A stretch of DNA of 44,566 nucleotides from contig JAAOMT010000140.1 of NCBI GenBank assembly GCA_016748015.1, forward strand, positions 1 to 44,566. The letters run 5' to 3'. Source of the DNA: Geosiphon pyriformis uo1 (lineage: Eukaryota > Fungi > Glomeromycota). Shown here one piece after another: positions 1 to 39,349 of the stretch; within the stretch, counting starts at the first letter, position 1, and each line of letters opens with the position of its first letter. The notes under the pieces were generated by a model, which was given only the letters and a program-made list of their open reading frames with translations, had not been told where the DNA came from and ran no database searches. Made by a program: the position numbers and the translations under genes.

Positions 1-1043
1 CCAATATTGGAGATTACGCGAAACGCTGAAACACTCGAGTATGGAATTGTGATGGATTTTGCCAAATATGGTGACATGCGAAAATATTTAGCAAAAAATC
101 TTCATTCTACGAGTTGGCCTGATAAATTAGAGATCGCGCAAGATATAGCTTTTGGACTTGATTCGATTCATTCTTCTGGTATGGTCCATCGTGATCTACA
201 CTCGGGCAACATCCTACAATATGTGAAAGATGAAGTGACTATTGGAGACCTCGGGTTATGTCAACCTACAAACACAAACAATGAAGCAACAACAACAGAG
301 GAGAAAAAGATCTATGGAGTGATTCCATACATTCCACCAGAAGTTTTAAGAGGAGAAAAGTTTACAACAGCTGGTGATATTTATAGTTTCTCTATGTTAT
401 TATGGGAATTAGCAACAGGAAAGCCTCCTTTTCATAATCGTTCTCATGATCACCTTCTTATAATGGGATATTTTAAATGGTCAAAGACCTGAAATTACCT
501 CCCCACTTATTCCACCTTGTATTGCTGAAATAATTGTAAAGTGTTGGGATGTTAATCCTGAGAATCGTCCTACTGCAAAAGAACTTAGAAATGAGTTGGA
601 AGAACTTTGGGAGATGGATGGCAAGAATTCTGGAAGAATGTCTAGTAAGATAGGAAGAATGTCTAGTAAGAGGGGAAAAATGAAACAGTTTAAAGAATCA
701 GAGAAATACGTTAAAAAAATGTTGAAAAACGACTCGAAAACAAATCATTCAAAAACAGCGACAACGACAACAACAAAGATAAAAACTCATCCACAAGCAG
801 TTTATACAAGTCGTGTTCTAAGTTTGCAAATGTTTGAAGAGACAAAAGGTCAGTTTATCTATTTTTATATTGAGTAATTCATTGATTTAAATTAATTAAC
901 ATAAATTTATTTTACTTTTTAAAAGAATTAATTTATTCGCCTAAAGGTAAGAAGTTAAACAAAATTGAGAATATAATTACAGTGTGTGCAATTGATTGAA
1001 AAGCTTATTTTACTATCTATCATATTTAGACGACTCTTCATGA
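1..1043 (+). pseudogene. TKL kinase paralog K1, 5'-truncated by the window edge, with one +1 frameshift at 465-467. Exons: <1-848, 926-946, 1030-1043
   Basis: It carries HRDLHSGN, GDLG, YIPPE, DIYS and LLWEL. An extra G at ATGGGATATT breaks the paralog consensus M-[D/A]-I-L-N-G-Q-R-P; frame +2 then continues CWD..RPT..HPQAVYTSR. Donor GTCAGT at 849, a 21-nt micro-exon (ELIYSPK) and a terminal DDSS* exon follow. It could be an intact gene with a homopolymer sequencing error. Confidence 0.8.
632..671 (+). repeat. In-frame 21-bp tandem duplication (GRMSSKI/GRMSSKR) in the K1 tail
   Basis: GGAAGAATGTCTAGTAAGA occurs at 632 and again at 653. Confidence 0.9.
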
Positions 1044-4066: not shown

Positions 4067-5723
4067 TTAAGAGTTATCTAAATAGAATAGATATTAAAAT
4101 AAATAAAGTTTAAACAAGAGTATATAATACATTCTAACTTTTTTTACCTCTTACCTTCAGGCAAATATACTAATTCTTTTAAAAGTAAATTTAGATAAAA
4201 TAGATTTTTAAAATAGTGTTTAACATTTAAATCAATAAATTATTCAATATAAAAATAGATAAACTAACCTTTTGAAAAATCAACCATCTGTGCAGTTAAA
4301 AGACGACTTGTATAAACTGCTCCTGGATGAATGTTTATCTTTGTTGTCGTCGAGGGTTTTGCTATCTCGTCGCTTTTCTTTGCTTTTTTAAGAAATTGAA
4401 TATATTTTGAAAATCTTCTTAAAGGTTTTGTTGTAGAGTCGTTCTTTAGCATATTTTTTACGTATTTATCTGATTCCTTAAACTTGGAAATTGTGTACAA
4501 AAGTTTACCCAACATATTGAAAACTTCTATCGCAGTAGGACGATTCTTAGGATTAACATCCCAACACTTTTTGATTATTTTGGCAATTGAAGTTGGAATA
4601 AGTGGGGAAGTAATCTTAGGTCTTTGACCATTTAAAATAGCCATTATAAGAATATGATCATGAGAACGATCATGAAAAGGAGGCTTTCCTGTTGCTAATT
4701 CCCATAATAACATCCCATAACTATAAATATCACCAGCTGTTGTAAAATTTTCTCCTCTTAAAACTTCTGGTGAAATGTATGGAATCACTCCATATATCTT
4801 TTTTTCCTCTGTTGTTGTTGCTTTATTGTTTACTGGTTGACATAATCCGAGGTCTCCAATATCTACCCATTGTTCATCATATTGTAAGATGTTGCCCGAG
4901 TGTAAGTCACGATTAACCATACCAGATCTATGAATTGATTCAAGTCCTCGAGCTACTCTATACGCGATCACTAATTTAACAGACCAACTCATAGAATGAA
5001 AATTTGTTGATATATATTTTCGTATATCTTCATGTTTGGTAAACTTCATCACAATTCCATACTCGAGTGTTGTAGCGTTTTGCGTAATCCCAAATATTGA
5101 AGATATACTATTTGAGTAGTTACCGCTATTCATAAACATAACTCTTTGAATATTTAACTATCAACACAGTGTTAAAAAGTAAATAGATAGCATACGGTAA
5201 ATAAATAAATAATAAGTAAATATGAATTAAATATAAATATAAATATAAATATAAATAATAATTTGTTTACCTCTTTAAACACTTCTGAACTGTTCGTTTT
5301 TATAACTTTTATTGCTACTTCTGTGCCTATTCTTCCTCTTTTATATTCCATTTCACCATGATGTTTTATAGTATATTTATTAATTACTCCATCAATTAGG
5401 GTTGCAATACAAATTATACCGAACCCTCCTCTAGCAATTTCCTTTATATTCGACAAACGCTCCCATGGAATCCATTCATAGTAATTCAATATACCATTAT
5501 ATTTTTTACTAAAATTATTAGGTGGAATATAGATTGGATTCTTAATTATTTCATCCACTTCTTCATTGCCGCTTGAAAAGTCTTTATAAAGTTTTTTGAA
5601 AAATCTGAAATTGCATGCACTACATTTATTATCACTATTGTTTAGAATACTCCATTGACAAATATAACACTCATCGCAATCATGAAATTCTGGACGATAT
5701 CTATTAATTTCTTTTTTTTCCAT
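4067..5723 (-). CDS. TKL protein kinase K2 with N-terminal Cys-rich module, ~457 aa. Exons: 5723-5271, 5157-4269, 4175-4155, 4077-4067
   Basis: Motifs: RGGFG, VAIK, FKE|L across a phase-0 GT-AG intron, NRDLHSGN, DLG, YISPE, DIYS, CWD, RPT, HPGAVYTSRLL. All splice phases are consistent and micro-exons encode ELVYLPE and DNS*. Confidence 0.9.
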
Positions 5724-13870: not shown

Positions 13871-16131
13871 ATTTGAAAATTAGATTGTGTAAAATATTTA
13901 GGAATAGGAAAATCTAAAAAAAAAACTCAAAATTTTTTTTTAGATGATTAATATTGTAAGATTACTGGATAGGGAGATCTTTTTTGGACGTCATAAAGAC
14001 TTTTGAAACTCGCCGATTTGTAATACTAGGTGAAATTTTTTTTTTTTTTTTTTTATAGACAATACCCCCCGCATATGCTATTATATAATTTAAAGTTTCA
14101 TAATCCTTTATTATTATTCAAAGGACACATGTTAAAGTAAATATCCCCTGTGAGTTACATTTCAATGAACCATTTACACATGCTTCTTTAGCCCTTGCAT
14201 ATGATATAAACACATTTGCTTTAAAACAAAGAAGGCTAAATAAAGAAATTTTTATTGTTAATCAAAGATATAAATAAGTATCCTAATAATTGTCATGAGA
14301 TAAAAAGATAACCCTTGACATTTATAATATCATGAAATTGATATTGAGAATATTTTAATGGGCAAAATAAAAAATATTTTTTTTTTATCAATGACGTAAT
14401 TTTGGAATTTTGATTACTAATAGTTCCCAATGAAAAAAAGCTTTAAACGAATAAAAAAATGTCCAATAAGAGTAACGTATTATCTATTGATATTATATTG
14501 ACCTTTACAAATGGAATTAATTTCAAGTGGTCAATTCTTTTTTTTAGCTTCTTATTTTTCAACAGATTTTTTAACCTCCTAATCAGCTGTTCATTGACGA
14601 ATGTTAAAATCTTTATAGAAAAATATTGTTGCTTCATTTGATTTGATTTGATTTGATTTGATTTTTTTTTTCATACGAAAATCTATTTTTAATCGTGTAC
14701 CCATAATTTTTAACTGGAAATATTTTTATATAATCAAGGATATAGTTAATAAATGTAAATGCTTCTAAATCTTTCAATTTTCTACTCATTGATAATATTT
14801 ATCAGGTTCACAAAATGAAAACTCATCTTTAATAATAGCCTTTTAAAAAATTCGGAGAATTTAAATAAAATTTTCTTTTGAAATAAAATGAAACTCATTT
14901 ATAAAATTCTATTTTTTAGATTAAAATCCTTTTAAAAGGATATCAATGAGAAATTTTGTGCATATAAAAGGAGCACAGCAAGGCTTTTTGTAGAATTAAA
15001 AATGATAAAATTTTATTTTAAATTGTGTTCATATTATGAAAACCGTTTACTGCACACACGTTATTAATGTAATAAAAGTAAAAATTAAATGCTTTTATCG
15101 TGTGTAACCTTTATTTTTATCTTTTAACCCAAAAAGTCTTCATAACTAATACATTTTTAGATTCCCTAACTGGCAAACAAGTGAAAATGAAAAGTTGACG
15201 AAATATAAAATAAATTATACTAATAAGAAAGTTCTTCAATAAAAAAAAACACTTTTTTAATGTCAAAAAATAAATTTTTTAGATCAGATTATTTGTATTT
15301 TCGGCACAGTTTTTGAATTATTATAATATCCAATTAAATATTTTATTTTAAAAAGAAATTTTAAAATTCATCATTATCATCATCATCATCATCATGAAAA
15401 ATACACAAAACGTAAAGTTTCTTTTTAAATTGATTAAGTCATTTAGAGCTTTTACTTATTTATCATTTATTTATCTCTTTATGACCTAAGATGGTTTCGG
15501 GATATGGCGGATAATCGACCATTTTTAGGTGACTAGATTTCATTTCCTGATTATAATAATTTCAATTGAAAAAAAAAAAATAAAAAAAAAATAAAAAAAA
15601 GTTTATTTGGTAGTAATTTATCATTTTAATAAATATAAAGACAATATTTTGACATCTTTATTAATACATGGGCTTGTCTCTGACTAACCTTTTTTATTAT
15701 AAATATATACTGTCAAACTAATGTGAACATAGCGTCGCTGTTGACTGATTATACATTATTGCATTGTTTATGGTATAGTTAATCTTTTAAAAATTACCCA
15801 ACCTGGATCACAAAGTAACAGAATGTTCGTATTATTGTATTATCTTTAAAAAGAATTGTTCTCTTTCATTTATTTACATGAATCCTCGCTGTACCTTTTT
15901 AATTTTGTGGTACTTTAAGGATTCTCAACACTATTAAAAACCCATCGGAAGGGAGAAATTTGAAACAGAAAGGGTCGTCTTTAATTCATTTATCACAAGA
16001 ATTTAAAGATTCTTTCACGCAGAAACACAAATCTGTGTTTTGATAGATAATTCACACAAAACTTGTTTTATTACACGTGCTTTGCTTCATATTACTACTA
16101 GATTGCATTTTCTTTGGCTCATATTTCGTCA

Positions 16132-16133
<2 letters not shown>

Positions 16134-16199
<66 letters not shown>
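16134..16199. repeat. (ATT)22 microsatellite, ~140 bp upstream of the central gene ATG
   Basis: Read directly from the sequence. Confidence 0.95.
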
Positions 16200-16201
<2 letters not shown>

Positions 16202-16339: not shown

Positions 16340-17621
16340 ATGCCACCTATCCGTCAATATCAAATGCAGCAACCAAAAAATCAAGATGAAGAAAATGATA
16401 CTTTTACTTCCCCAAATTCCTCACAAGTTATTATAAACAAAGACAAGGAGAAAAACAGACGTAATAGACGTTCGCCAAATATTAATACTCGAGCGTCGCG
16501 TGTCGGTGTCACCAATTTTATTAATGTGATCAAACATCTCCACCCTGGTGAATCAAGGACTCATTTTCCAATTAATAAGGAAAGTTTGCAAGAATACATA
16601 GACTCCAAGAGAAAAGCCTTGATAAAAGCTGGTTCATTAGAACAATATCTACAACATATTCAAGCCTATAATATTGCTCTTGGCTTTGGATGGGATGGTG
16701 AAATTTTTGGACCCATAATAAAGAAAGTTTTAGATGAATTACGAGTTAATGAAGAAGAAACGCAAAAATCATTTGAACAGCGATCAGGGACATTTTCAAT
16801 GAACCCAGAATTTTTGCCTGGTTCAAGTTCGACTCCAGCTGCTGATGTGATTAATTTGTTACGAAGTGATTATAATATCAATAATCCTTTGTTTGATATG
16901 GATCAAAATGACGAACGACGGGGGATTTTTCATCAAAATAATTCATCAATTACCAGCCATGAATTTCTTCAGCTAGCTGGCCATGGTAATAATTTTCACC
17001 ATACCTTACCTAATTTTTGATGTGTTTAAAAGGTTATTCCCTTCCGTTCCGTTCCGTTACCTACCCAAACTTTTAATTTTTTCCCTAATTAAATTATGAA
17101 AATTTTAATTTTCTTTTTTACTTAAACAGAGAAACAATCTAGCGTTGGAGATTTTCATGGTAGGTTTAACAAAAAATTATTTTTATTAAAGAATTGGAAG
17201 TCTATTATTTAATTTCTTTTTCAATCTATTTTGACATTCATCCTCTTTCTTTATCAATCTCAAAGCTAATATTACTGAGAGAAAATCTAATGGGTTGGAG
17301 GCAATCCCCATGAATGTTATCCAGACATCCTCAAACTTATCAATAGAAACTTCAATTCTTAAATCAGTCACTATCCGATCCAAAAACAGAGTCTACAAAC
17401 AAAAAATCGCTGTGGGAGAAACGACAACTTTTGCGTCTATAGTCACGTTTGCGATTAAAGCAAGTCCTCCGACAAGGAAACAATTTGTAATCCGATCAAT
17501 TGATGGCACTTTAGAGTTCATGCCAGAAGATATTGTCAAGCAAGTTATTACCGATGTGGAACATGCTGAACTATTGGTGACTTTGGAGGATGAAAGTCCT
17601 GTGGACTTTGATTATTTTTAA
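16340..17621 (+). CDS. Uncharacterised ~343-aa protein: integrase/tyrosine-recombinase SAM-like (core-binding) domain, low-complexity linker and C-terminal beta-grasp-like domain. Exons: 16340-16985, 17130-17159, 17266-17621
   Basis: Two GT-AG introns (GTAATA..CAG and GTAGGT..AAG), both phase 1, join the 229-aa and 108-aa ORFs without stops through a 30-nt exon (EKQSSVGDFH). The gene model is well supported; the domain calls rest on motif resemblance. Confidence 0.8.
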
Positions 17622-18443
17622 AAAAATCATTGTCACCTTTTTAAAAGCCTCCTTGTTTAATTCTAAATTTTCTGATATAATGTTTCTTTTAGATTTTGAT
17701 CTTTTTTCTGATACTATTTAGACCATCTCAATATTTTGTCATCTTTTTCTTTTTTTGATTATAAATTCCAACTTTTTAAGACAATTCTCAATAAATTAGT
17801 TTAAATATTATAATATAACATCGAGATTTTAGTTTAAAAAAATGAGGGGGCTATACATTAAACATAATTTTTTTCTCAACCTCTTTTTTCTGTACATATT
17901 CATAATTTCTTTATTAAAAATATATAATTATATATATATATATATATGATTGAGTGACATTTCTAAGCCCCTCATATTATATGATTTTTATTAAATAAGC
18001 ACTCTTTTATTAAAGATAATTTTTCATTTCCATTAAATCTTTATTTTGTTTCCATATTAAATTAAATTAAATTAAATTAAATTAAATTCATGGTAAAAAA
18101 AATATATATATGAAAAGTTCTATTTCATTTTTTTTTTCTTGATATTAATTTTATCAATTAAGATATATACAATATATATGATTTGCTTTTTTCATTTTAA
18201 TTTATATATTTAAGAGATTTATTTAAAGAGAAGGATCTAATTTTGAAAAAGAAAAAAATGATTTCTGATCAAAAAATGGTTAAAAAAAAGTTTTTTTCAT
18301 CAAAAAGGACCTTTGAATAACTTTTTTAATAAAAAAGAAGATTTCCCGATCAAAAAAAAGTCAATCTGTAACTCTTTTTTTTTGTGGAAAAAAGCTAAAC
18401 CGTTTGATCACCATAATAAATATATAAATACCCATCTTTGTAC

Positions 18444-18444
<1 letters not shown>

Positions 18445-18489
<45 letters not shown>
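18445..18489. repeat. (TAA)15 microsatellite
   Basis: Read directly from the sequence. Confidence 0.95.
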
Positions 18490-18491
<2 letters not shown>

Positions 18492-18965
18492 GCTATTTTT
18501 TTTGGTGAAATGAAAACAGATAAACGATGCATCGGAAAACTTCAAATAAGGCTTAGAATGTTGAAATTGAATATATCCATATTTGAACATCTTTGAATGA
18601 ACTTTTTTAATTTAAAGCACGTTTTTATTTTAAAAAATACAAAAAAAAAACGAAATAAACCTGTCGAGAATGAACAATACCAGTATAAAATTTAAAAGAA
18701 AAAAAACCCTTTTTTTTCTTTTTAATTAATTAATTAATTAATTTTTGTGAGAGTTTTAAACACCAAAAAATTATGTCATCATATTATTCGTACAAAAAAA
18801 ATAAATTGGTATAATGAAATTTTCACAAACTTTGCAGGGAACTGGATCTATTTAATTTTTAATTATTATAATTTTTTTTAGTTTTAATTAACAAAAAAGT
18901 CAAGGGTCTGTGCTTATCATTTCTAAATGGTTTTTTTTCTTTTTTTTTTTTTTTTTAAATATTAG

Positions 18966-19207
18966 NNNNNNNNNNNNNNNNNNNNNNNNNNNNNNNNNNN
19001 NNNNNNNNNNNNNNNNNNNNNNNNNNNNNNNNNNNNNNNNNNNNNNNNNNNNNNNNNNNNNNNNNNNNNNNNNNNNNNNNNNNNNNNNNNNNNNNNNNNN
19101 NNNNNNNNNNNNNNNNNNNNNNNNNNNNNNNNNNNNNNNNNNNNNNNNNNNNNNNNNNNNNNNNNNNNNNNNNNNNNNNNNNNNNNNNNNNNNNNNNNNN
19201 NNNNNNN
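18966..19207. other. Assembly gap (242 N) between poly-T runs
   Basis: Run of N in the sequence. Confidence 1.
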
Positions 19208-30448: not shown

Positions 30449-32002
30449 TTACGGAAGGTAGATAAAGTCTATTTGAAAATTCAAATAAAAGAAACTTAGC
30501 ATATTAATTTACTTAATAGATTCATCAATTGAAAAGCTTATAACTTATAACTTTTATGAACTAACCTTTTGATTCTTCAATCCTTTGCCAACTTAAAACA
30601 CGACTTGTAAAAACTGCTCCTGGATGAATGCGCGTTGGAGTTGTTGTTTCCGTGTCGTTTTTTACCATTTCTTTTACATATTCCTCTGATTCTAAAAACT
30701 CGAAATTCCTACGCGAAATTTTATCCAACTTCTGTCTAACTTCTTTCGCAGTAGGACGATTCTTAGGATTACCATCCCAACACATTTCAATTATTTCAGC
30801 AATTGAAGGTGGAATAAGGGGAGAAGTAATCTTAGGTCTCAAACTATTAAAAACAATGTCAAATATGAGATCGAGGTCATGAGGAAGATCATGAAAAGGA
30901 GGCTTTCCTGTTGCTAATTCCCATAATAACATGGCGTAACTATAAATATCACCAGCTGTTGTAAACTTTTCTCCTCTTAAAACTTCTGGTGGAATGTATG
31001 GAATCACTCCATAAATATTTTTTTTCTTTGTTGCTTTTCCTGTTGTTGTTTCTTCATGGTTTACTGGTTGACATAATCCAAGGTCTCCAATATTTATATA
31101 ATCATTCTTCAATTGTAGAATGTTGCCCGAGTGTAGATCACGATGAACCATATCATAATAATGAATATTATAAAGTCCAAAAGCTATCTGATGCGCGATA
31201 CGTAATTTACAAGCCCAACTCATAGAATGAAAATTTGTTGATAAATATTTTCTCATGTCTCCATGTTTAGCAAACTCCATCACAATTCCATACTCGAGTG
31301 TTTCAGCGTTTTGCGTGATCCCCCATATTGACGTGATACCAATGCTTGAATGGTGACCCATGTGATTATAGTTAGGTCTTTGAATATTTAACTATTAACA
31401 GTGTATAAAAGCAAATAGATAATATGATAAATCGACCAAATAGATAATATAAATAAATAGATAATAATATACAGTAAATAAATAATTGGCAAATATGAAT
31501 TAAATATAAACATAAATAATAATAGTTTGTTTACCTCTTTAATCACTTCTGAGCTGTTCCTTTTTATGATTTTTATTGCTAGGTCATCAATCTTTTTTCC
31601 CTTATGATTAGCTCTTTCTCTTTCATATTCCATTTCACCATGGTGTTTTATAGTATATTTATCAATGAATCCATCAATTAGGGTTGCTTTATAAATTATG
31701 CCGAACCCTCCTCTAGCAATTTCGTTTATATTCGACAAACTCTCCCATGGAATCCATTCATAGTAAACCAATCTATATTTACATAAATCATTATTATTAG
31801 GTCTAATATAGACTGGATTCTTAATTATTGCATCAACTGCTTCATTGCCGCTTGAAAAGTTGCGGTAAAGTGTTTCAAAAAATATGAACCAGCATGCTCT
31901 ACAAGAATTAGGACCATTTTTTTCAATACACTCTTGACAGTGTGAGCATAGGTTACAATCATGAGCCTCTGGACGAGTTCTTTTAATTTCTTTGTGTCTC
32001 AT
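30449..32002 (-). CDS. TKL protein kinase K4 with all catalytic motifs intact, ~437 aa. Exons: 32002-31535, 31391-30566, 30468-30449
   Basis: Motifs: RGGFG, LAIK, KE|L, HRDLHSGN, DLG, YIPPE, DIYS, CWD, RPT, HPGAVFTSR. The last exon DFIYLP* is homologous to the 21-nt micro-exon of the paralogs. Confidence 0.9.
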
Positions 32003-37646: not shown

Positions 37647-39349
37647 TTAAGAGTCGTCTAAATATAATTAATAGTAAAATAAATAAGTGTTAAACAAGAG
37701 GATAAATTTTATTAATGATTAATGATTAATAATACATGTAATTTCTTACCTTCAGACAAATATAATAATTCTTTTATAAAGTAAAATAAATTGATGTAAA
37801 TTTTTAATATACTGTATATTAATTGATATTAATGAACCAATCAATATAAAATTAGATAAACCAACCTTGAGAAAAATTCAACATCTGTTCAGTTAAAAGA
37901 CGACTTGTATAAACTGCTCCTGGATGAATGCTTATTGTTGCTGTCGAGGGTTTTGCTATCTCTTCGTGTTTTTTAGTTTTTTTAAAAAATTTAATATATT
38001 TTAAAAATCCTCCTAAAGGTTTTTTTGTCTCCACAAAACCCTTTTCTGAAGATTTTGTTGTAAAGTCGTCGCTTTCCGCACTTTCTGATTCTAAAAACTG
38101 TTTCAATTTTGCCCTATTAATTTTAGAGTTTTTTGTATACCCCTTACAGATATCCACAAGTCCCCACAACTTATTCCTAACTTCATTGGCAGTAGGACGA
38201 TTCTTAGGCTTAACATTCCAACACTTTACAATTATTTCAGCAATACAAGGTGGAATAAGTGGGGAGGTAATTTCAGGTCTTTGACCATTTAAAATAGCCA
38301 TTATAAGAATGGCGTCATGAGAACTATTATGAAAGGGAAGCTTTCCTGTTGCTAATTCCCATAATAACATGGCAAAACTATACATATCACCAGCTGTCGT
38401 AAAATTTTCTCCTCTTAAAACTTCTGGTGGAATGTATGGAATCACTCCATATATCTTTTTTTCCTCTGCTGTTGTTGCTTTATGGTTTACTGGTTGACAT
38501 AATCTGAGGTCTCCAATATTTGCCTCACAAGTACTCAATTGTAGAATGTTGCCCGAGTGTAGGTTACGATGAACCATACCAGAAGAATGAATTGAATTAA
38601 GTCCAGAAGCTATGCTCCATGCGATTTCTAATTTATCAGACCAAGTCATAGAATGAAAATTTGTTGAACAATATTTTCGCATGTCTCCATATTCGGCAAA
38701 CTTCATTACAATTCCATACTGGAGTGTTTCAGCATTTTGCGTAATCCCCCATATTGAAGAGATATAATCTAAGTCTTTACCGTGGTTATTAATAAACATA
38801 GCTCTTTGAATATTTAACTATCGACATAATATAAAAAAAGATAATAGTCAAATAAACGATAATATACAGTAAATAAATAATAAATATTGATAATAATACT
38901 TTGTTTACCTCTTTAAACATTTCTGAGCTGTTCGTTTTTATAGTTTTTATTGCTACTTCTGTCCCTATTCCTTCCCTTTCATATTCACCATTACATCTTA
39001 TACTTCTCTTGTTAATTAATCCATCGATTAGGGTTGCTTTATAAATTATACTGAACCCTCCTCTATTAATTTGACTGATATTCGATAAACGCTCCCATGG
39101 AATCCATTCATAATATAAAACTCTACCATATTCTAATATAATATTAGGTGGAATATAAATTGGATTCTTAATTATTTCGTCTACCTCTTTATTGCCACCT
39201 GAAAAGTTATTATAAAGTTTTTCGAAAAATATTAAGCGGCATGCCGCACACCAATTCTCTTTATTATTTAGAATACTCTGTTGACACGGTTTACACTCGT
39301 TGCAATCATGGGCTTGCGGACGATTTCTTTGAATTTTTTTGTTTTCCAT
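37647..39349 (-). CDS. TKL paralog K6, intact frame but predicted pseudokinase, ~474 aa. Exons: 39349-38909, 38817-37866, 37770-37750, 37657-37647
   Basis: The frame is open and all splice sites are conserved. Substitutions: HRD>HRN, DLG>DLR, GGFG>GGFS. Micro-exons encode ELLYLSE and DDS*. Confidence 0.85.

Follow-up and report, generated by a model that had tools for sequence, protein, structure and literature searches.

The gene at positions 16340–17621 (forward strand) of the 44.6-kb stretch of Geosiphon pyriformis DNA analyzed here (contig C482, hereafter the window) probably codes for a host regulatory protein specific to arbuscular mycorrhizal fungi (AMF; Glomeromycotina). The predicted protein joins two modules: an N-terminal helical domain (N domain) that is predicted to fold like the core-binding domain of tyrosine recombinases and likely derives from a mobile element, and a ubiquitin-like tail. 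A preliminary description of the locus, made from its sequence alone, had proposed such a union of a recombinase-type domain with a ubiquitin-like module. The analysis supports this overall reading: both modules match the expected folds in structural comparisons, the gene is present in low copy number, and its coding sequence is under purifying selection.

Gene model and predicted product

The gene has three exons and a frame that is intact over 343 codons, and its predicted product is identical to the NCBI hypothetical protein G9A89_003530 (P0001, 343 amino acids). These exon coordinates, the GT..AG introns and the identity with the database protein bear out the intact 3-exon gene of the preliminary description. 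All of the peptide segments quoted there are present in the exon translations, and the basic patch that it had singled out (KEKNRRNRR) lies within the longer KDKEKNRRNRR motif (Table 1). We ran the full-length analyses on the database protein P0001 and searched the exons individually. Exon 1 codes, in order, for an N-terminal tail, the basic arm, the core-binding-like domain and an acidic linker. The K/R-rich patch is kept in the orthologues, and the net charge of the window protein is +7 over amino acids 36–55. Both exon junctions are phase 1. Skipping of exon 2 also keeps the frame and, thus, both domains stand under either gene model. The gene forms an island of 34% G+C versus 23% for the window.

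Table 1. Coordinates of the gene, its predicted domains and an adjacent repeat in the window.
Feature	Position	Strand	Description
(ATT)n microsatellite	16131..16200	.	Upstream of the gene; not an element end
Exon 1	16340..16985	+	Amino acids 1-215 and first base of codon 216; starts with ATG; open frame, identical to P0001 1-215
Basic arm / NLS-like patch KDKEKNRRNRR	16439..16471	+	Amino acids 34-44; from translation
Tyrosine-recombinase core-binding-like helical domain	16475..16786	+	Amino acids 46-149; predicted, AlphaFold2 model m0238bbfc0819, pLDDT 83.9
Predicted intron 1	16986..17129	+	144 nt, GTAATAAT...TTAAACAG; canonical GT..AG ends, frame continuity, agrees with the NCBI model P0001
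Predicted exon 2 (30-nt micro-exon)	17130..17159	+	P0001 residues 216-225; position of the orthologues' middle-domain exon
Predicted intron 2	17160..17265	+	106 nt, GTAGGTTT...TCTCAAAG; GT..AG ends
Exon 3	17266..17621	+	Amino acids 226-343 and stop codon; equals the C-terminal part of P0001
C-terminal ubiquitin-like beta-grasp domain	17361..17618	+	Amino acids 258-343; predicted, AlphaFold2 model m5c4600ca958b, pLDDT 90.5

The N domain is predicted to have the fold of a recombinase core-binding domain

We modeled the N domain with AlphaFold2 from an alignment (A2) of 26 sequences sharing 30–80% identity. The model (pTM 0.72) is all-helical, with main helices at approximately amino acids 55–67, 80–92, 97–113 and 120–149. 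The best 20 or so entries listed in a Foldseek search against the PDB are all Cre, with probabilities of 0.87–0.99, TM-scores of 0.52–0.58 over 84–95 columns, and E-values of only 0.2–1.3. Cre also came first in a wide search of 48,161 representatives with VIA-align, which is independent of Foldseek; the match extends over 101 residues (Cre 32–137) and has a Z-score of 10.0, although the documentation of the tool notes that helical bundles can score above 10 by coincidence. The matches that followed were QRICH1 (6.7), DNA-bound ALOG (6.3), IntI (6.1), XerA (5.6) and domain 1 of Ndc10 (5.4 and 4.8).

Searches of the ESM Atlas gave similar results. Six of the ten rows retrieved by shape carry a Pfam family, in every case a tyrosine recombinase or a core-binding domain, at TM-scores of 0.55–0.69. 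These matches include bacterial recombinases of the XerC and integron types, a cnidarian element with a reverse transcriptase (RT) and a recombinase (YR), and clusters named ‘core-binding domain’. A search by language-model features retrieved clusters at 0.94–0.95 whose names were core-binding domain, Phage_int_SAM_1 and QRICH1. The SAM-like core-binding domain proposed for the N-terminus in the preliminary description is thus upheld by predicted structure, with Cre at the top of the Foldseek and VIA-align searches and the Atlas shape and feature searches in agreement.

Sequence comparisons reached less far. The N domain is 12–15% identical to Cre. When the A2 alignment was compared to Cre of phage P1 with hhalign, the stretch FP...Y...[ST][LI]xQ[YH]L aligned with Cre 60–103 (P 0.006, calibrated probability 6%) in a register that agrees with the structural superposition on Cre. 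We take this stretch to correspond to Cre helices B–D, which approach the DNA, and consider it a lead only. The N domain is basic (pI 9–10) in all 26 family members. The window protein had no Pfam match at E-values up to 10, and searches of Pfam, PHROGs and PDB sequences with both domains returned nothing significant. No profile of Phage_int_SAM_1/3/4/5, ALOG or QRICH1 matched significantly, 3 of the 26 members touching SAM-like models at E-values of 0.07–0.18, and a PDB profile search with the N domain gave no matches. Matches to DUF7634 (E 0.05–0.07) and to multicystatin (E 0.011 and 0.11) were treated as chance.

The predicted structure provides good support for assigning the fold of a tyrosine-recombinase core-binding domain to the N domain. 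Common descent from the N domain of a recombinase is likely, as judged from the predicted structure and the language-model features, and falls short of proof since none of the sequence statistics reaches significance. The evidence does not single out any donor element, be it Crypton, DIRS or Ngaro. What follows the N domain in the window protein is only the acidic linker and the ubiquitin-like domain, and the scanned family members contain neither Phage_integrase nor DUF3504. The protein is not a tyrosine-recombinase enzyme.

The C-terminal domain is a predicted ubiquitin-like beta-grasp

The model of the C-terminal 86 amino acids, built from an alignment (A3) of 23 sequences, has its secondary structure elements in the order b-b-a-b-b-a-b. 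Foldseek matched it to SUMO, UBX and Ufm1 with a probability of 1.00. In a structure comparison, 274 chains reached a Z-score of at least 5 and the listing was dominated by ubiquitin-like proteins such as FAT10 (8.8) and SUMO (approximately 8); further matches were ubiquitin and the ubiquitin-like domains of EccD. The window protein ends in DFDYF and the family consensus in D-x-F, with no C-terminal Gly-Gly. By its model and its terminus, the domain is a predicted ubiquitin-like beta-grasp of the non-conjugatable kind. Among the sequences in A3, one His is invariant, a TF pair and an E are nearly so, and conservation extends to the first hairpin, which is basic, and to the tail, which is acidic and aromatic.

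The preliminary description had called this end of the protein ubiquitin/PB1-like. Its beta-grasp part stands with the model and the Foldseek matches, and its PB1 part has no specific support, the resemblance being to ubiquitin-like proteins in general. The domain matched neither PB1 (PF00564) nor any named ubiquitin-like family in Pfam, and the PB1-like NTD of Par3 scored a Z of 7.5 against the model, within the generic ubiquitin-like range. The conserved basic hairpin and acidic tail cannot be aligned to OPCA. A prediction of a complex of two copies of the domain scored 0.00, which is no answer and counts neither way.

We also identified the same C-terminal module, always at the extreme C-terminus, in other proteins from early-diverging fungi. 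For example, it follows a Myb/SANT domain of the trihelix type (Pfam E 7e-15) in the Geosiphon protein G9A89_009102 (P0110). In proteins from Basidiobolus it follows Cys-rich N-terminal regions and, in proteins from Mortierella, other N-termini. What precedes the module in the proteins from Mortierella and Basidiobolus was not recognized by Pfam, and Myb/SANT is the only identified DNA-binding domain among the partners of the module in other proteins. The module defines an undescribed domain family that Mortierella and Basidiobolus proteins share with the family described here. A C-x4-C-x24-C-x-H spacing can also be noted in the Mortierella proteins and may be WRKY-like.

A conserved family in AMF that has lost its middle domain in the window

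Word-based and exhaustive profile searches retrieved orthologues across the Glomeromycotina, answering the call of the preliminary description for an ortholog search. They are proteins of 330–460 amino acids from Rhizophagus (GLOIN_2v1572339), Funneliformis, Diversispora, Acaulospora, Scutellospora, Cetraspora, Racocetra and Ambispora, and Gigaspora has one as a partial record. The exhaustive profile search gave 95 matches among 1.84 billion cluster representatives. All of the named N-domain matches come from Glomeromycotina, with the domain nearly always at the protein N-terminus. We found no description of the family in the literature when searching by locus tags and by topic, and no Pfam family covers its own domains. 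Synteny with the orthologous loci is uninformative because the neighborhoods are gene-poor.

An alignment of the family (A1) has three conserved blocks: the N domain (approximately amino acids 46–135 of the window protein), a middle domain of approximately 115 amino acids and the C-terminal domain of approximately 86 amino acids at the end of the protein. Between T50 and W118 of the N domain, 51 residues are invariant in 13 orthologues. The window gene is missing the middle block and has its 30-nt exon where the orthologues have an exon of 270–350 nt (approximately 90–117 amino acids). A tblastn search of the window, introns included, recovered no remnant of the middle domain. As read from the sequence, then, the middle domain kept by the orthologues has been lost from the window copy. 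The middle domain of the orthologues gave leads, all weak, to GRHL1_C, TDP-43_N, Ubiquitin_GT-1 and PB1 in the feature search.

Two further clades, from Gigasporaceae and Acaulospora, consist of more distant proteins with the N domain. In these proteins, the domain lies at the very N-terminus and long regions rich in S, N, Q and P come after it, with a short helical segment at the end of some of them, a layout that is reminiscent of transcription factors.

The preliminary description had also called for an estimate of selection, which proved strongly purifying. For all pairs of N-domain sequences from five AMF genera (90 ungapped codons), pS is saturated (0.64–0.86) and pN is 0.02–0.11. The C-terminal domain has a pS of 0.72–0.78 versus a pN of 0.22–0.32. 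The near invariance of the N domain across all of the AMF orders sampled, at saturated silent sites, suggests that its target is conserved and probably essential.

Copy number and genomic surroundings

The surroundings of the gene agree with the statement of the preliminary description that no R-H-R-Y domain, RT or terminal repeats lie nearby. No other open reading frame of at least 90 amino acids is present between 8 and 26 kb of the window. The other large open reading frames of the whole window include no recombinase or reverse transcriptase; they either code for protein kinases or are without a match in Pfam. We saw no terminal repeats or element ends at the locus, and the repeats around the gene are only (ATT)n/(TAA)n microsatellites. 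An inverted pairing of positions 16131–16200 with 18444–18491 was rejected as a low-complexity artefact, its partner being a (TAA)n run.

A search of the Geosiphon genome (128 Mb) recovered one intact-looking paralogue (contig C560) and three truncated 3' duplicates. The C560 paralogue keeps all three blocks and is approximately 55% identical to the window gene in the N and C domains. Its closest relative in the searches is the Rhizophagus irregularis protein GLOIN_2v475988 and, therefore, the duplication is old. The three DNA-level duplicates (C662, C772 and C564) are 73–85% identical to the gene and all contain stop codons. They begin inside intron 2 and span exon 3, and those on C662 and C772 extend into the 3' flank. 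In R. irregularis, too, degenerate copies lie at a distance of a few kb from the orthologue. Hence, where the preliminary description had left room for many dispersed copies with element ends, the copy number is low and there are no such ends.

We also searched for a donor. HMM searches of the Geosiphon genome with PF00589 (Phage_integrase), PF12012 (DUF3504), PF25561 (QRICH1) and PF02899 (Phage_int_SAM_1) gave no matches, though a positive control did not work for at least one of them (DUF3504) and absence does not follow from these searches. No protein in the library of 1.84 billion contains both the N domain and the catalytic domain of a recombinase. The hallmarks of an active Crypton, DIRS or Ngaro element (a recombinase open reading frame, terminal repeats and many copies) were not found. 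A transposon family that is active, or that died recently, would look different.

Alternative explanations

Mere convergence of the N domain on the core-binding fold is unlikely, at perhaps one chance in several. In that case the domain would be a helical bundle particular to the lineage, with no ancestry among recombinases or transposons, and the protein could bind protein or RNA instead of DNA. Convergence would fit the result that no recombinase family matched significantly by sequence, an hhalign probability of 6% and Foldseek E-values of at least 0.2, and the structural tool itself warns that helical models often receive middling Z-scores by chance. No protein with the N domain and a catalytic domain is present in the library, as convergence would also predict. 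However, assorted bundles are not what the searches returned: four of them (Foldseek against the PDB, VIA-align wide, Atlas shape and Atlas features) meet on one family, Cre leads the second-best match by 3.3 Z units, and the three that come next are likewise N domains of the recombinase type. Furthermore, the hhalign register matches the superposition, and the domain is basic family-wide.

The other alternatives concern what the gene is today. Intactness argues against a decaying window copy, with the C560 paralogue as the functional Geosiphon member, even though the middle domain is absent, exon 2 is down to 30 nt and the three truncated 3' duplicates carry stop codons. The 343 codons and the canonical splice sites are intact, and the N domain of the window copy is 79–89% identical to those of the orthologues (pN 0.07–0.11 at saturated pS), whereas that of C560 is only 55% identical to it. 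The C560 type is also a separate and old paralogue with a Rhizophagus relative of its own, and we regard decay as improbable. Lower still is the likelihood that the gene is part of a mobile element even now, supplying a DNA-binding accessory protein to a Crypton, DIRS or other element with its remaining parts outside the region inspected. Elements bearing a recombinase are reported in Glomeromycota (PMC13465315), and there are partial duplicates in Geosiphon and degenerate copies near the R. irregularis orthologue. Yet the old C560 paralogue is the only other place in the Geosiphon genome with the 5' half of the gene, there are no terminal repeats, the large open reading frames of the 44.6-kb window include no recombinase or RT, selection is strongly purifying, and in every AMF lineage sampled the orthologues have introns and a low copy number. 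A split host site-specific recombinase, in which the core-binding-only protein would act in trans with a separate catalytic half encoded by the host, is similarly far-fetched.

Proposed role of the protein

The reading that we prefer is that of a host regulator. The basic arm and the domain of four to five helices would most likely come from the core-binding domain of a mobile-element recombinase, whose catalytic half would have been lost before the AMF radiation. By analogy with ALOG, QRICH1 and Ndc10, we infer that the N domain is now probably DNA-binding. The basic arm and the core-binding-like domain may contact DNA together, in the way known for the homologous part of Cre and ALOG (PMC3537659, PMC10927535). 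Core-binding domains of tyrosine recombinases bind DNA with helices that enter the major groove; for the N domain, the pI of 9–10 throughout the family and the basic arm give such binding indirect support. The ubiquitin-like domain would most likely provide a protein-protein contact, either for self-association or for the recruitment of a partner. The product would then probably be a nuclear DNA-binding regulator. The broader proposal, that the family is an AMF-wide family of transcription factors that arose by independent capture of a recombinase DNA-binding domain, is in our view about evenly balanced between true and false.

Comparison with known proteins

The AMF family looks like a fungal parallel to the transposon-derived ALOG regulators of plants. 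In ALOG proteins, the host has kept a recombinase-type N-terminal DNA-binding domain without the catalytic domain (PMC3537659), and a DNA-bound structure is available (PMC10927535). Like the family described here, ALOG (DUF640, PF04852) is lineage-specific and has a stand-alone domain of the recombinase N type; its structure 8p5q_A is the third-best match to the N domain (Z 6.3 over 96 residues). However, ALOG proteins are specific to plants, have no ubiquitin-like tail, and carry a zinc-ribbon insert, whereas the N domain of the window protein (amino acids 46–149) does not contain any Cys. The Pfam scans of the family gave no ALOG/DUF640 match. Captured recombinase parts are already known; what is new relative to ALOG is the missing zinc ribbon, the different kingdom and the ubiquitin-like partner domain.

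The fold is also shared with Cre, XerC/D and the integron integrases, all of which have the R-H-R-Y catalytic domain that is missing here. Among eukaryotic host proteins made from recombinase parts are QRICH1 and ZMYM, both from CryptonA, and Ndc10 and Gcr1, both from CryptonF (PMC3212892). QRICH1 and ZMYM retain a DUF3504 domain with the catalytic fold (PMC3212892, PMC13465315), whereas the AMF family keeps only the N-terminal helical domain. QRICH1 (9hjt_H, residues 471–598) is the second-best structural match to the N domain (Z 6.7), and the recombinase-like domain of Ndc10 is larger than the stretch matched here. QRICH1, ZMYM, Ndc10 and Gcr1 all differ from the window protein in having no ubiquitin-like tail, and the family scans gave no Pfam matches to GCR1_C, DUF3504 or QRICH1. 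The Glomeromycota have CryptonA elements of their own, Glomhopper, which are multi-copy and have DUF3504 with catalytic residues; the paper reporting them describes neither this family nor a derivative reduced to the N domain (PMC13465315). Glomhopper elements are from the same phylum as the family and are a plausible kind of donor, to which no sequence link could be made.

If the proposed origin is true, the family represents a further and apparently independent capture of a recombinase domain, in AMF, and its pairing of a core-binding with a ubiquitin-like domain is a new architecture. To our knowledge, few lineage-specific regulators have been characterized in AMF, and a family restricted to these fungi is therefore a concrete candidate for study. 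The combination of a DNA-binding domain with a beta-grasp module likewise occurs in GT-1 trihelix proteins (PF26214), Grainyhead (GRHL1_C) and ARF/IAA proteins (PB1), whereas the matches of the C-terminal domain here are only to generic ubiquitin, SUMO, UBX and FAT10.

Domain modularity and duplication

The N-terminal recombinase core-binding-like, middle and C-terminal ubiquitin-like blocks of the family behave as separable modules, because the Gigaspora rosea protein P0075 carries the middle and C-terminal domains and lacks the N domain. The ubiquitin-like module also forms the C-terminal ends of two Mortierella proteins (P0100 and P0115) and three from Basidiobolus (P0056, P0063 and P0078). 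The N-terminal regions of these proteins are conserved and rich in Cys, and Pfam recognizes none of them. The Mortierella pair has a C-x4-C-x24-C-x-H spacing, tentatively similar to that of WRKY-type zinc fingers.

The 3' half of the window gene (G9A89_003530) has three truncated DNA duplicates in the Geosiphon genome (73–85% identity), which contain stop codons and have their 5' edge within intron 2. Degenerate N- and C-domain copies with stop codons are also present in Rhizophagus irregularis (locus L013, 16288–18785), 4–7 kb downstream of the intact orthologue, suggesting that copies have arisen by local duplication and decayed in this fungus as well. For the Geosiphon paralogue on contig C560, the last intron of the database model (P0039) was probably wrongly predicted, because the annotated tail after 'GHAE' is non-conserved and an open frame (L002, 2726–3031) runs on to the conserved family ending (..DFSQF).

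Genomic surroundings

Tyrosine-kinase-like protein kinases are an expanded family in arbuscular mycorrhizal fungi. At least four ORFs in the window contain such domains (Pfam E-values of 1e-30 to 6e-38) and are a local cluster of this family.

Truncated duplicates of the gene and kinase ORFs of the window
Feature	Location	Strand	Source
Truncated 3' duplicate	G000:C662:830747-831467		
Truncated 3' duplicate	G000:C772:57813-58500		
Truncated 3' duplicate	G000:C564:17386-17740		
Tyrosine-kinase-like protein kinase ORF	window 7-492	+	Pfam
Tyrosine-kinase-like protein kinase ORF	window 4264-5139	-	Pfam
Tyrosine-kinase-like protein kinase ORF	window 30561-31361	-	Pfam
Tyrosine-kinase-like protein kinase ORF	window 37852-38799	-	Pfam

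Immediately 3' of the gene is a short dispersed repeat of approximately 185 nt (18063–18250), with at least five further copies (76–77% identity) on contigs C626, C655, C662 and C772. A run of N, which is either withheld sequence or an assembly gap, lies at approximately 18958–19205 and is flanked by long poly-T/poly-A tracts.
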